Shown in pieces: positions 47,103 through 52,798 of a DNA stretch of 64,000 nucleotides. Source of the DNA: Rebecca billardiae RCC1528 (lineage: Eukaryota > Protista > Haptophyta); contig OZ251247.1 of the NCBI GenBank assembly GCA_965240325.2, positions 744,001 to 808,000 of the forward strand. Direction: 5' to 3'. How positions within the stretch are numbered: position 1 is the first letter of the stretch; each line of letters begins with the position of its first letter. The position numbers were made by a program, and so were the translations under genes. Below the pieces are notes generated by a model. It did not search any database. It was not told the DNA's origin and was given only the letters and a program-made list of their open reading frames with translations.

Positions 47103-50100
47103 TCACGCGCGGCTGTACCGCGCGGCCGAGCGGTACATCGAGTTCTGGCGCGTGGCCGCGCTCATGCCGCGCCGGCCGGCGCACGGGCTGTCCGCCGCGC
47201 GCAGCGAGGCGAGGACGCCTGACTCAGCCACGGTGTCCCCCGCTGCGACGAGCCCGCCGAGCTCGTACGCAGCGCCGCCGAGGCCGCCCGCCGCGCCCGC
47301 GCCGCCAAACTCGGCCGCGTCCGGCGCCCAGAACGAGCCCACAAGGCTCGGGTCCGGGGGAATCACCGGACCGACCGCGGCGGCGGCCGCGCTCCCAGGC
47401 GCGTCGTGCGCGCCGGCGGCGGGCGCGGCGGGCGCGGCGCCAAAGCTGGCGGAGGTGCGCAGGTGCGCCGTCAGCGGGTTGGGGGACGGGCAGCCGCCGC
47501 GCATGAGCGGCGACGAGCTCGATGTGCGCGAGATCGACGTGCGCGCCGACGTGCTGCGGCGCGTGGGCGTGGGAGGCGGGTAGAGGGCCGCAGAGGTGGC
47601 GGATCGGCGCGGCTTGGCGCGGCCCGCCAGGCCCGGCGGCGGCGACGCGCTTTCCGCGAAACTTCCGGCCGCGCTCTGCGGCTGCTGCGGCGGCTGCGGC
47701 TGCGGCGGCTGCGGCTGCGGCTCGACGCGCGTGCTGCGCACGCTGCCGGAGGCGTCGCTGAGCCGCGCCGACGAGTCCTGCCGCGAGATTGAATCTCGGT
47801 GCGAGCTCCGGCGCGAGATTGAATCTCGGAGGAGCCGCGCGGCCGAGTCCTGCCGCCGGCCGAGCAGCGGGCTCGGTCCGGCCGACGCGCTGCCCACGCC
47901 GGACGCCCACGACATGCGCAGGCTGAGCGGCCTCGCGCCGCCCGCGCCGCCGCCGCCGGCGCGAGGCGCGCCGCCGTGCGCCTCGAGCCCGCCCACCGAG
48001 CCGTCCGACGTGCGGCGCGGCTCGGGCGCGACGCGCGCGTTGCGCAGCCGCTCGCGCAGCGAGTTCCCCGGACTGATTCCGCCCGGACCGGGCGCTCCGG
48101 ACAGCAGCTCGTCCGGCGGCGGTCCGGTCGCGCCCGAGCACGCGTACCGCATCGCGTCGAGCAGGACCGGCGGGAAGTGGTCCGGCGGCCAGATCTGCGC
48201 CGCGCGCGCGAGAACCTTGTCGCGGTGTCGCAGCTCCGGACCGGCGCGCAGTACCATCCCGTACAGGTGGAGGCAGGTGTCGCGCAGCCGGCGCTTGTCG
48301 CACGGGATCTGCCGCCCGTGCCGGCGGTGCTCGTGCGCGCAGCACGTGAAGTCGCCTGCCGCAGGCAGGCGGCAGGCGGAGGTGTGTGGTGGTGGGCGTG
48401 GGTGGGCGAGTGAGCGCAGGAGAAACACGCGGCGGCAGTACCCACACATACGCGGGGGCAGTACCCACACATACGCGGGGGCGGTGCAGTACCCGCACAT
48501 ACGCGGGGGCGGTACCCACCTTCGAACATGAAGAGCATGTCGCTCAGCACGCGCAGCCCGCGCTCGGCGGAGACGGCGGCGAGCGCTGAGTGCAGCGCGT
48601 CGTCCGCCATGCCCAGCACGCGCAGTGCATGGCAGTCCGAGTCAGCGGCGCGAGAGAGGCGGTCGGAGCCCCCGCTGGGGGAAGGTGCGGCGGCGCCGCC
48701 GCCCGCGCCGCCCTCGGCACCGCCGCCCGCCGCCGCGAGCGTCGCCGGCGTCCGCGGCACGGCCGGCGAGCGCGGCTGCGCCCGCGCGCCGCCGAGCAGG
48801 CCGAGCGATCGTCGCACGGCCGCGACGGGCGACGCTGCAAGCGAGGAGCCGCGCGACGAGGGCGCGCCGAAGGACGAGACGTCGTCGTCGTCGTCCACCC
48901 CGTGGCTGCCGCCACTCGCGGCAGCCGGCCTGGACGCGGCGGCGGCGCGGACTGTGAGCGTGCCGGCCGCGCGGCGCGCGCCGGGCGAGATAGGGTTAGG
49001 GTTAGGGTTCGGGTTCGGGTTAGGGTTAGGGTTGCGGACGGCAAAGGAGTCGTCATCGGCGAGGCTTGTATCGTCCGAGCCGAGCGCGGACGACGCAGTC
49101 GACAGCGGGCGCACGCCGCGCACGCCGCGCGCCGGTGCGCCGCCGGGCGGCAGCGCGTGCGCGGGCGGCGCGTGCCCGCCGGCGCGCGAGCCGCCGCCGC
49201 CGCGCGCCGGCGGCCATGGCGGCAGCGCCTCCCCCAGCGAGGCGATCCGGCTGCGCGCGCGTTCGGTGCGCCCTCGGTGCGCCCTGGGCGCGGCGCTGAG
49301 CCTGCTGCTGCTGTCGTCCGGCGCGCCCTCGCCGCCCGCGCTGCTCCGCTCGCTCGCGCACGCCGAGCGCTCCCCACCGCCGCCACCGCCGCCGCCGTCC
49401 TCATCGCCGCCGCCGCCGCCACCACGGCCGCCCTTGCCGCCGCCGCCGCCGCGGCCTGCGCTCGAAACTCGCGACTTGGCGCGCGCGGCGGCGGCGGCGA
49501 GGCACGCGGGCGACTCGCAAGCGCACGCGAGCACGCGCGCCGCGGCCGACGCCACGCCCGCGCGCGGCGGCGAGTGCGGCGGGCTCGCAGCCTCCAGGTC
49601 GGGCCGGCCACTCGGCCGCTCGGCGACGGCGGCGGCGCCGCCGCCACCAGGCGACGACGACGGCTGCGGCCAGCGGCGCGCCGCACCGCCGCCGCCGCCC
49701 TGCGCCAGGCTTACGCCACCCGCCTCCGCCTCCGCCGGCGGCGTGCCGGGCGCGCAGTGCGGCTCGGGCGCGCGCTGCGAGGGCGAGTAGGGCGAGATCC
49801 CGAGGCCCCCGTACCCGCCCTCCTCCCCGCCCACCACGCCACCGCCGCCGAGCCAACCGCCACCGTCGCCGCTCGTGTTCAGCCAAGCCGGTGGCGGCGC
49901 GGCGGGCGGCAGCGCGGCGGCGGGCGGCTGTGGGGCCGCCGAGATTGCAATCTCGGACCCCGCTGCCGCCCTCCTCAGCGGCTCCGGGGCGACGGCGGGC
50001 GCCATGATCTGCGAGGTGGTCACCATCACCCGCGGCAGTGGCTCCTCCGATGGCGCCTCCGCCTCCACCGCCGCCACCTCGCGGCGCGGCGGCGTGCGCA

Positions 50101-50139
<39 letters not shown>

Positions 50140-52798
50140 GCCTCAGCGCGGCGCCGCCGCGGCCGCCCGCGGCGCGGCCGCCGCTGCCGCCCTCCTCAGC
50201 GGCGGCAGTGCCGGCGCCCGCGGGCTTGGTGAACGTGGCGAAGCGGCCGAACACGTTGCCGCCGCCACCGCCACCGCCGCCGCCGCCCGCGCGAGTCCGG
50301 GCGCTACCCGCCCGGCTCCCGGACTCGGCGCCTTCCAGCATGGCCGCCGGGGGACCGGCCGCGTCGGCGGCGGCTGGCGCGCCGCCGCCATCGCCCTCGT
50401 CGCCGCCGTCGTCGTCGCTGTCGTCGTCGAGCATCCAGTCGAAGGAGAGGGGCAGCACGCTGCCGCCCTTGCCGCTGCCCGTCGGCGCCTCGCACGCCAA
50501 ATACAGCGACGAGCTGCGCGCACGGCCGCGTGCGCGCGCGCGCGCATGCGCGTGGGAGTGAGTGCGCGCGCGCGCGCGCGCGCGCGCGCGCGCCGGGGGC
50601 CGCCGCGCGCGCTGCCGCGCGGCGACCTCCCCGCGCGTGATCCACGCGCGCCCCGCGCGCACCCCGAGAGCATCGACGAGAACATCTCGACGCGGCACCA
50701 GCCGCGCCGGAGGAAGGTTCTCAAGTTGATCTCCGGAGAAGAGTTGTCGAGTCGTGTCGGCGGCGCGACGACGAGGAGGACGTGGGCGAGCGAGGCGTAC
50801 GCGGAGAGCGAGTCGATCGCGGCCTGCTGCTGCGCCGCGTTGCGCTGCGGGATCGACATGTAGTCGATGAACACGTACACCTCCGACGCGCGCCAGCCGA
50901 GCTGTTGCCCCAGCCGCTTGATCGCCGCCATGATCGTAAAGTAGTGCACGCCGTTCGGGTCCGGGTCCTCCGAGATCCACCTGCGCACAGCACAGGATGC
51001 AAAAAAAAAGAAAAAGCGCGCAGGCGGCGAAAAGGGGAAAAGGGACGAGCAGAGGATGAGACAAATGGGCGCGCGCGCGCGCGCGCGCGGCCGGGCGCGC
51101 GCGCGGGTACGCACTGGTGGCTGCAGAAGACGATGCGCCGCGTGAGCGCGAACTCGCGCGCCTCCGTCGCCGAGTCGATGAAGACCAGCCGCCCCTCGTT
51201 GCGCAGCTCCTCGTGGTGGCGCAGCTCGCCCAGCTGGCGCGGCAGGAGAATTGCATCAGAATCACGGAGAGGAGAGGAGAACAAAAGGACAGAGGAATAA
51301 AGAAGAAGAAGAAAGAATCCATCCAGATATAAATGCAAGCGCGCGGGGAAACGCAGGACGAATCATGACGGCGGCGTGGGGCGGACGCGCGGTGGGAGCG
51401 GCGGGCGGGGCGGGCCACGGGCGGCGGCATGGGCCGTCAGCCAGCGCGCGCGCCGCGCGCGGCGGCGGAGGGCGCGCGCCGCGTGTGACGCAGCTGGGCG
51501 CGCGCGCCAGAGAGAGATGGCCATCTCGCCGAGATCGCAATCTCGCGCACCTTGCAGAAGTGGCTGAACGGGCAGAGCACGAGCGGGAAGAGCAGCCGGC
51601 CCGAGTGCTCGAGCAGCGCGACGCAGTGCGCGTGCGCGCGCAGCCGCTCCGCGCGCGTCGCGTCGAGCTCCAGCTGCTTCGCGTGCAGATGCACCGACCC
51701 GTGGCCGCAGAGCACCAATTGAATTACATTTAATAAAAGCGAGCAGAGCGCGAGCTGCCACGGCGGCGGGTGCACGGAGGCGGACCCCCACGTGGCCGTG
51801 TGCGCGCGCATCGCGGCGGGCCCGGGCTCGTAGCAGTACTCCACGCCCACCATCCCCGTGTAGTGCGCGCCCACCGTGCCCAGCGCGAAAACGAACGCCG
51901 CGCCGACCCGCGGCCCGAGCGAGTCGATATCGTCACGCTGCGAGACGTGGGCGATCACGAGTAGCCCGGCGCCCGAGGCGAGCGCGGCGACGGCGACGCT
52001 CGCCACGACGAAGCCGGGGGAGAAGTCGAGCGAGAACGGCCCGCGCATGCTCAGCATCCCGAGGTAGTGCATCACCGCGATCCCCGCCGCGAAAATCGCC
52101 GCGCCCGCCAGGAAATGTCGGCGGCCGTCGACCGCGGTGCGCAGCAGCGTCGCGCGCCAGCCGAGCTTGGCGGGGGTGCCGGAGGGCGTGCCGCCCGGGA
52201 GCAGCTGCGCGGCGTCCGCGCCGCCCGCGCCGCCCGCCTCGCCCGCGGGCAGCGCCACGTGGATCGCCGTCGCGCTCGAGAGCACGGCCACCAGCGCCGA
52301 GGCCACCATTGGCGCGCTCGCAAAATCGTGCGGGACCGGCTCACCGGCTTCACCGCCGCGGCCGCCGAGCCTGAGCTGCATCGAGTGCATGCCGACAAAG
52401 TGCATGGCGAAGATGGCCGAGCCGCCGAGCGAGAGCCCCGCGCTGCCGAGCAGCACGTAGTACCACCCCGAGAAGTCCGCGTGCTCCAGCCGCACCTCGC
52501 GCGCGTAGATCATCGTCGTCAGTCCCACATACGACCCGGCGACCGCGATTGTGTAACTCAGCGCGACGAGCCAGCTGCACGGCCGCGGCAGGCAGGCAGC
52601 CGAAGGGCGGGAGTCCACGCACGCACGCGCGCGCGCACGTGCACACGCACGCGAAGCGGGCGGGCACCGGCCGGCTCGTGAGCGCAGGGCGGGCGGCGCG
52701 CGCGCGCGCGCGCGTGGCCGCGCGCGCGCTCGTGCGCCGCACCCATTCCACTCCTGTTCGAGGCTCATGCCCGGAGTGAGCACGCCGTCCTCGATCAT
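47103..52798 (-). CDS. MHYT membrane-sensor domain fused to a HET-like (TIR-related) domain, spliced
   Basis: Exons 52798-52743, 52574-51551, 51233-51115, 50980-50663, 50513-48520, 48355-47103 join in frame by GT-AG. MHYT motifs WLVALSY, AMHFVGM, VMHYLGM, GAHYTGM; HET-like motifs FCSHQW, PDPNG, VFIDYMSIPQ, AIDSLSAY, FLRRGWCRVE; later FEGDFTCC...CDK. Confidence 0.8.
48434..48517. repeat. Intronic minisatellite, unit ~GCAGTACCCACACATACGCGGGG
   Basis: Three full units plus a partial unit within intron 48519-48356. Confidence 0.8.
48991..49033. repeat. (TTAGGG)n-like tract within the MHYT-HET gene
   Basis: TAGGGTTAGGGTTAGGGTTCGGGTTCGGGTTAGGGTTAGGGTT; reads NPNPNP if exonic, or marks a cryptic intron. 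Confidence 0.8.

Follow-up and report, generated by a model that had tools for sequence, protein, structure and literature searches.

The segment between positions 52798 and 47103 on the minus strand of the analysed stretch (64,000 nucleotides of contig OZ251247.1 from Rebecca billardiae RCC1528, hereafter the window) raises the question of whether a single gene joins an MHYT membrane sensor to an intracellular domain resembling HET and TIR domains and, if so, how such a receptor might work. According to the data presented here, the segment very probably represents one six-exon nuclear gene coding for an MHYT sensor together with an output domain, and the output domain is likely to be a remote member of the HET/TIR superfamily. 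How the sensor would act on the output domain is a more tentative matter, and the alternatives are weighed below.

As to the existence of a single gene, each exon piece was searched on its own, and not as part of a joined protein, with a family profile (A1) of 304 positions built from 75 complete domains. The tail of exon 2 matched profile positions 4–30 (3 bits, weak by itself), exon 3 positions 31–69 (35 bits), exon 4 positions 75–176 (142 bits) and exon 6 positions 211–276 (28 bits). The pieces are collinear with the profile, the junction between exons 2 and 3 falling exactly between positions 30 and 31, and this order appears to be far beyond chance. Moreover, the seventh MHYT helix and the first ~30 profile positions of the output domain lie together in exon 2, which argues for a single gene. 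The ATG at 52798 and the stop codon at 47103–47105 enclose exons adding up to 4764 nt, that is 1587 amino acids provided that exon 5 is coding throughout. All five introns, in a local DNA of 68–82% GC, begin with GT and end with AG; four donors read GTGCG (that of intron 4, GTGCGC, lies at 50662) and the fifth reads GTGGGT. Conserved motifs are carried across the junctions: an intron interrupts a Gln codon of exon 3 (donor CA/GTGCGT, acceptor CGCCAG/), SHQ/W spans the junction of exons 3 and 4, and FEG/DFTCC...CDK spans the last intron, exon 5 ending right before it with the conserved ...LSDMLFMFE-G. P0099, P0125 and other MHYT-type relatives begin with a stretch similar to the short one encoded by exon 1. 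These results agree with a preliminary description of the locus, which had given the same start, the same stop and three MHYT-type repeats; all the motifs that it quoted are present on the minus strand.

The same combination of domains was found among relatives. A phmmer search in which exon 4 was the sole query, run against 1.84 billion cluster representatives (clusters at 50% identity), gave 784 matches at E ≤ 1e-3, including 241 at E ≤ 1e-10; the best relative is 45% identical, none of these representatives being closer, and Pfam is without a model for this family. A word search with the open reading frame (ORF) around exon 4 gave no match, and no relative was found when viral contigs were scanned with the core alignment. 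In nine of the 150 top representatives the output domain is accompanied by a region matching the MHYT exon of the window, eight of the nine reaching the Pfam MHYT model. All nine are single uninterrupted ORFs on contigs barely exceeding them (e.g., 936 aa on 3110 nt), and 23 of the contigs read, ~2.4 kb each, carry one and the same 749-aa form. The contig size and the uninterrupted ORFs suggest that these contigs are transcript assemblies. Since sensor and output domain occur in one ORF on such transcript-like contigs in nine relatives, the fusion is real and recurrent. In a tree of the core, the MHYT-linked domains cluster (two label changes versus 9.6 when labels were shuffled; 0 of 500 shuffles as low) and fall into two well-supported groups. 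The MHYT fusion is old and diversified; a single origin of the MHYT-linked domains is still compatible with this tree. Exon 4 of the window groups with P0088, P0004 and P0121, with weak support (84/48).

Table 1. Exons of the gene and motifs encoded by them (window coordinates).
Feature	Position	Strand	Content
Exon 1	52743..52798	-	ATG and short N-terminal outside stretch, ending ...EQEWNG; donor GG/GTGCGG
Exon 2	51551..52574	-	MHYT domain (7 hydrophobic helices), helical linker, first strand of output domain (LLFPLVL)
Exon 3	51115..51233	-	N-terminal extension of output domain (HEELR...) to strand A; ending ...FCSHQ
Exon 4	50663..50980	-	TIR-like core of HET-like domain: W of SHQW, PDP, FIDYMSIPQ, AIDSLSAY, VVAP, RRGWCRVE
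Exon 5	48520..50513	-	1994 nt; short conserved start, long low-complexity loop insert
Exon 6	47103..48355	-	C-terminal half of output domain (DFTCC-x-H-x-H...CDK, LYG, IWPPDHF), low-complexity tail, stop
MHYT motif 1, MHFVGM	52388..52405	-	End of helix 2
MHYT motif 2, MHYLGM	52055..52072	-	End of helix 4
MHYT motif 3, AHYTGM	51851..51868	-	End of helix 6
FIDYMSIPQ	50871-50845	-	Exon 4
AIDSLSAY	50820-50797	-	Exon 4
WCRVE	50700-50686	-	WxxxE pattern with candidate catalytic Glu; exon 4
CC-x-H-x-H-x2-H-x5-C-D-K cluster	48294..48344	-	Inside output domain, exon 6

The protein collection also holds a 358-aa prokaryote-style gene call (P0167) on a 1642-nt contig, which is identical to exon 2 and represents the window's own ORF, corresponding approximately to window positions 51551–52624. 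Automated annotation would thus register an orphan MHYT protein only and miss the fusion. As far as the introns are concerned, long (GC)n dinucleotide runs lie within introns 4, 3 and 1 (50516–50621, 51069–51105 and 52696–52737, respectively); four of the five introns also have GTGCG donors, and GCAG acceptors are preceded by pyrimidine tracts, and the whole looks like a signature of introns in this genome. The last intron, between ...FMFE-G and DFTCC, is mostly filled by a tandem repeat (48427–48519) with a unit of 23 or 28 nt in ~3 to 4 copies.

The low-complexity insert of exon 5 is the part of the gene on which a quite different explanation may be built, i.e., that the locus is a decaying paralogue or consists of two transcription units, exon 5 being GC-rich non-coding DNA open by chance, with no full-length receptor. 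At 80% GC long open frames are cheap, and the splice model was built on homology and sequence signals. The insert, rich in Gly, Ala, Pro, Ser and Arg and with an open reading frame, would make a loop of ~660 aa, unusually long and 2.5 to 9 times longer than the inserts of ~70 to 260 aa found in the same loop of MHYT-type relatives, and part of it may be intronic. Besides, a telomere-like run inside exon 5 may mark a non-coding stretch, and three conserved positions are substituted in the window copy (Y to F at an invariant column, W to F and H to L at near-invariant ones). Against this explanation, the codon-position GC signal continues across exon 5 and the tail: over the 577 codons of exon 5, position 3 has a GC of 0.89, compared with 0.79 for position 1 and 0.77 for position 2, the maximum lies at position 3 in 13 of 19 sub-windows while the introns are flat, and in exon 6 the domain part has a GC3 of 0.95 and the tail of ~340 aa one of 0.91. 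In addition, the conserved blocks are all intact, in frame, in order and bounded by canonical splice sites, nine of the ten residues invariant in the family are retained, and the transcript-like contigs of relatives show variable inserts at the same loop. We consider a decaying or mis-modelled locus very improbable; it is the only one of the three alternatives discussed here that the data make unlikely. A reading of the insert as clearly non-coding was rejected, the codon-position signal arguing that it is mostly coding; most of the insert looks coding on this ground, and in-frame internal introns may occur within it. The telomere-like run, odd for a putative coding insert, consists of seven tandem copies of TAGGGT (48991–49033; period 6, 94% matches), the telomere unit TTAGGG in cyclic permutation, and is translated in the open frame as (Asn-Pro)7.

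The sensor part of the one-gene model is recognized by Pfam: PF03707 (MHYT) matched exon 2 in three stretches with an E-value of 4.1e-23 and 81.6 bits (cut-off 21), and NCBIfam yielded a match to a histidine-kinase model that was confined to its MHYT part. Hydropathy predicts seven membrane segments, and each of segments 2, 4 and 6 carries one of the motifs (at residues 57, 168 and 236) at its C-terminal end. The motifs would lie at the outer face of the membrane, because the output domain is placed in the cytosol; the Arg and Lys residues, read by eye from the sequence, cluster in the predicted inside loops. Outside the family, the nearest word-search matches of exon 2 are bacterial MHYT-LytTR proteins, with 29–30% identity. 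The bacterial MHYT protein CoxC senses CO in a copper-dependent manner, with O2 as an antagonist (PMC11347149), and by analogy the MHYT part of the window protein might sense a gas. The bacterial one-component sensors CoxC (MHYT-LytTR) and NbdA/MucR (MHYT-GGDEF-EAL) share with it the seven-helix module, the three motifs at the outer membrane face and the cytosolic output directly fused to the sensor. Unlike them, the window protein is encoded by an intron-bearing gene of a eukaryotic host, reads AHYTGM in its third motif and carries a HET/TIR-like output in place of a DNA-binding or cyclic di-GMP domain.

The output domain (~300 aa) is conserved end to end among the relatives. The first part of the family consensus reads FP..L...HE.LR...F.SHQW..PDP...HY...W.DY.SIPQ...LAI.SL..YAS..FV.VAP...TY..RGWCR.E and is directly followed by the second, ...VF.G.FT(CC..H..C)DK..LV..LGLY...FP..F. 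Ten residues are invariant in the family (E, S, W, Q, Y, R, W, C, R and E); 75 of the 75 relatives share the W, C, R and E of the W-C-R-x-E motif, as well as S, W, Q and R. The Cys/His segment had been described at first as separated from the effector domain, and was also considered as a module of its own; this had to be abandoned, as in the alignment it makes up the C-terminal half, itself conserved, of the output domain, parted from the rest by the variable low-complexity loop. Its CC-H-C cluster is a possible metal (zinc-knuckle-like) or redox site. In a pattern search, the CC-x3-H-xn-CD[KR] subtype was found in 39 of the 150 top matches and in seven of the nine MHYT-type matches; P0088 was missed by the pattern, but the cluster is visible in it by eye, and P0065 is truncated.

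The regions associated with this domain in the top relatives are ANF_receptor/periplasmic-binding (8), MHYT (8), Ephrin_rec_like (5), FG-GAP (3) and DOMON (2); further partners are Cache, CHASE, solute-binding proteins, the response-regulator receiver, cytochrome b561, peroxidase and multicopper oxidase. Since these partner regions are nearly all sensors, the domain is best seen as the output of receptors, and the idea of a one-component receptor, advanced from the window alone, fits the family as a whole. Ank, LRR and MORN occur as partners in other haptophyte Atlas clusters. A further haptophyte Atlas cluster, 99% of which carries H-NOX (HNOB, PF07700), was matched by the output-domain model with a template modelling (TM) score of 0.52, so that a second type of gas sensor appears to be joined to the same output. 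The relatives, including P0001 with its ANF_receptor (Venus-flytrap) region, make up a highly modular receptor family with several redox-related partners.

What kind of domain the output domain is was approached from two sides, HET and TIR. HET (PF06985) is the sole Pfam family recurring among the relatives: 23 of the 75 matched it at E ≤ 1, the best at 1.5e-5, and other families appeared once each. In P0065, the stretch SHQW...WVDYSCIPQ was aligned to positions 5–69 of the HET profile. Structurally, an Ascomycota Atlas cluster with PF06985 in 100% of its members matched residues 20–315 of a model of P0088 over 197 residues, with a TM score by query of 0.49. The two domains also have a similar size (~220–300 aa). 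As a lead, and not as a test, the strings SHQW, W.DY.SIPQ and RGWCR.E may be set beside LSY.WG, W.D.LCI.Q and RGW..QE, which we take to be the corresponding strings of the HET consensus and which follow in the same order. Unlike fungal HET (the cell-death effector of HET-E, TOL and HET-B), which is N-terminal on NLR-type proteins, the domain described here is C-terminal and cytosolic on membrane receptors, it has an N-terminal extension of its own (FP..L...HE.LR), the CC-H-C cluster and a variable loop, and most of the relatives, like the window exons, stay below the Pfam HET threshold. A link between HET and TIR, and the presence of HET homologues in Haptophyceae including Emiliania huxleyi, were published in 2014 (PMC4986451).

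For the relation to TIR, AlphaFold2 models of the relative P0088 were made with the 75-row alignment. The model of 331 residues reached a predicted local distance difference test score (pLDDT) of 89 and a predicted TM score of 0.88, and the core of 151 residues alone a pLDDT of 93. With the whole model Foldseek retrieved nothing significant, just weak flavodoxin-type and TIR matches, and an exhaustive structural aligner placed both TIR domains and deoxyribosyltransferases at Z ~6. The core aligned with the SARM1 TIR at Z 7.6 (104 residues, root-mean-square deviation 3.6 A), the top rank being shared with an uncharacterised protein of Enterococcus faecalis; MyD88, TIR-1, TRR-2, MAL and TIR-STING followed at Z 6.4–6.9, and about a dozen TIRs other than SARM1 lay at Z 5.5–6.9, their alignments taking in most of the 151 core residues. 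Trimming to the core also improved the Foldseek result, TIR-STING being matched with an E-value of 5e-3 and a probability of 0.99. In the predicted models, W-C-R-x-E starts the helix after the third core strand. A WxxxE motif on the C-helix belongs to the NAD+ site of TIR enzymes, and TLR TIRs have a Cys in its second place (bioRxiv 10.1101/2023.05.19.541320). The invariant W-C-R-x-E at the place of the TIR WxxxE is the strongest single point for a TIR link, and it fits the earlier choice of the Glu of WCRVE as the candidate catalytic residue. With the NADase TIRs (SARM1, plant TIR-NLRs, Thoeris ThsB, AbTir and TIR-STING) the domain would have in common, going by the models, a flavodoxin-like core with the same order of strands and helices and a W-x-x-x-E that opens the helix behind core strand 3, with Cys second as in TLR TIRs; it further resembles them in its apparent use as a receptor output. 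Unlike them, it has roughly double the length of a TIR domain and no sequence match to solved TIRs. The preliminary label of HET/TIR-like domain is supported for the family, as a remote relationship, through the HET matches of relatives and the SARM1 alignment, whereas the exons of the window stay below all the Pfam HET and TIR thresholds.

On these grounds, the following mechanism can be depicted. The protein would be a membrane receptor with its N-terminus outside the cell, a seven-helix MHYT domain, a single helical linker and a cytosolic domain of ~300 aa, whose core would have a TIR/nucleoside-deoxyribosyltransferase-type alpha/beta fold and which, as a whole, would be a distant relative of fungal HET. 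A small gas or redox ligand would occupy the MHYT metal site (with copper, as in bacteria) and reposition helix 7 and the linker; this movement would alter the self-association of the output domain or the geometry of its active site. The output domain would then act on NAD+ or a related nucleotide through the invariant Glu of W-C-R-x-E, the outcome being a signal or a death/arrest response. An MHYT receptor with a ligand-gated TIR-like enzyme is the best overall explanation, to which we give about an even chance. Its enzymatic part taken alone, namely an NAD+ or nucleotide output under the control of the sensor, is put forward more hesitantly, as something short of probable; NAD-derived signalling and cell death are ascribed to the domain by analogy.

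Several points weigh against this explanation. No exon piece of the window matched Pfam HET even at E-values up to 10 (gathering score 22.5 bits), neither the window exons nor the 75 relatives matched Pfam TIR (PF01582, PF13676 and related families), and NCBIfam likewise yielded neither HET nor TIR for the exons of the output domain; solved structures searched by sequence with exon 4 and with the family profile gave chance matches only. The third MHYT motif has Ala in the place of its first Met. The predicted structures are those of the relative P0088 and not of the window protein, and the equivalence of the W-C-R-x-E Glu with the TIR catalytic Glu is inferred from the motif and its place on the helix. 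For HET itself, both the biochemical mechanism and the structure are listed as not determined (PMC12881547). Finally, every structural Z is below 8, and the Rossmann domains of fucosyltransferases (Z 6.5–6.8) are on par with the TIRs. For both these reasons the fold match alone is not a proof, and it could be due to a common alpha/beta arrangement.

The last point leads to the possibility of an enzyme other than an NADase. The domain could be an N-glycosidase or transferase acting on nucleosides or nucleotides, comparable to nucleoside 2-deoxyribosyltransferase or MilB, or else an enzyme using sugar nucleotides, with a product or substrate unlike the cyclic ADP-ribose (cADPR) isomers of TIR type. 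Indeed, deoxyribosyltransferases and MilB stand level with the TIRs when aligned with the core (Z 6.3–6.9), the best Foldseek probability, 1.00, is that of a deoxyribosyltransferase (E-value 1.2e-2), and the fucosyltransferase scores just mentioned point the same way, as do the N- and C-terminal extensions and the CC-H-C cluster, which have no counterpart in TIRs. This possibility sits less well with the sole recurrent sequence signal, which is that of HET, a TIR relative, and with the W-C-x-x-E spacing, which is as in TIRs; we regard it as improbable.

The same architecture might also work with no catalysis at all. The HET-like domain would in this case be a non-enzymatic adaptor, and receptors clustered by their ligand would nucleate homotypic assemblies with soluble Ank-, LRR-, TPR- and MORN-linked members, as TLR TIRs do with MyD88. 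Many soluble relatives do carry repeat-type partners, adaptor TIRs (MyD88, MAL, TIRAP and TRIF) are among the top structural matches, and exactly such a role was proposed for HET by Dyrka et al. in 2014 (PMC4986451). The ten invariant residues, however, are mostly polar and lie near strand ends and where a helix begins, more like an active site than an interaction surface, and the retained Glu of WxxxE is an enzyme signature. A pure adaptor is a minority possibility, less favoured than the ligand-gated enzyme.

As regards the literature, no paper mentioning MHYT together with haptophytes was found in the searches made, nor one describing an MHYT-HET/TIR-like architecture. A close precedent is a 2025 transcriptome of virus resistance in Gephyrocapsa (Emiliania) huxleyi, which reported receptor-like "TIR domain" genes induced early in infection, whose proteins combine an intracellular TIR-type domain with a conserved Glu and, ahead of it, either a ligand-binding extracellular part or multiple N-terminal transmembrane helices (PMC12489294). 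The design logic is the same, i.e., a sensor N-terminus and an intracellular domain, and those genes may overlap with the family of the window (compare the ANF_receptor-linked P0001). Unlike here, they were defined by HHsuite matches to Pfam TIR families, HET not being among these, and MHYT is absent from the main text of that paper. The contribution of the present analysis is one added type of sensor, the assignment of the Cys/His block to the domain and a tree, and not a new principle.

The gene nevertheless brings two long-standing unknowns into one protein: the chemistry of HET, whose mechanism is still listed as undetermined in a 2025 review (PMC12881547), and what MHYT senses beyond one bacterial example. 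A receptor with both domains gives each of them a readout for the other, and the short-loop members of the family are compact and well modelled. If the domain is a TIR-like enzyme, a very large algal receptor repertoire would feed straight into nucleotide signalling or cell death, which would bear on how blooms respond to viral infection, to oxidants and to gases, NO and CO among them; if it is an adaptor only, it would still represent an undescribed Toll-like signalling layer in protists. In a broader and rather doubtful extension, the HET-like domain would be in marine protists, haptophytes foremost, a general enzymatic output of one-component receptors, filling the niche that kinases and cyclases have elsewhere; in the present case a copper-dependent MHYT sensor of CO, NO or O2 would directly switch a TIR-type cleavage of NAD+ or nucleotides. 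Were this true, gas or redox cues would be tied to second messengers or programmed cell death in a bloom-forming alga, and the sister architecture with H-NOX would argue in the same direction.

A last observation concerns the relative P0003 (806 aa), which gave 13 separate matches to the query, all of them around query residues 61–97; this protein may contain many copies of the A.DSL..YAS...VV.AP block.

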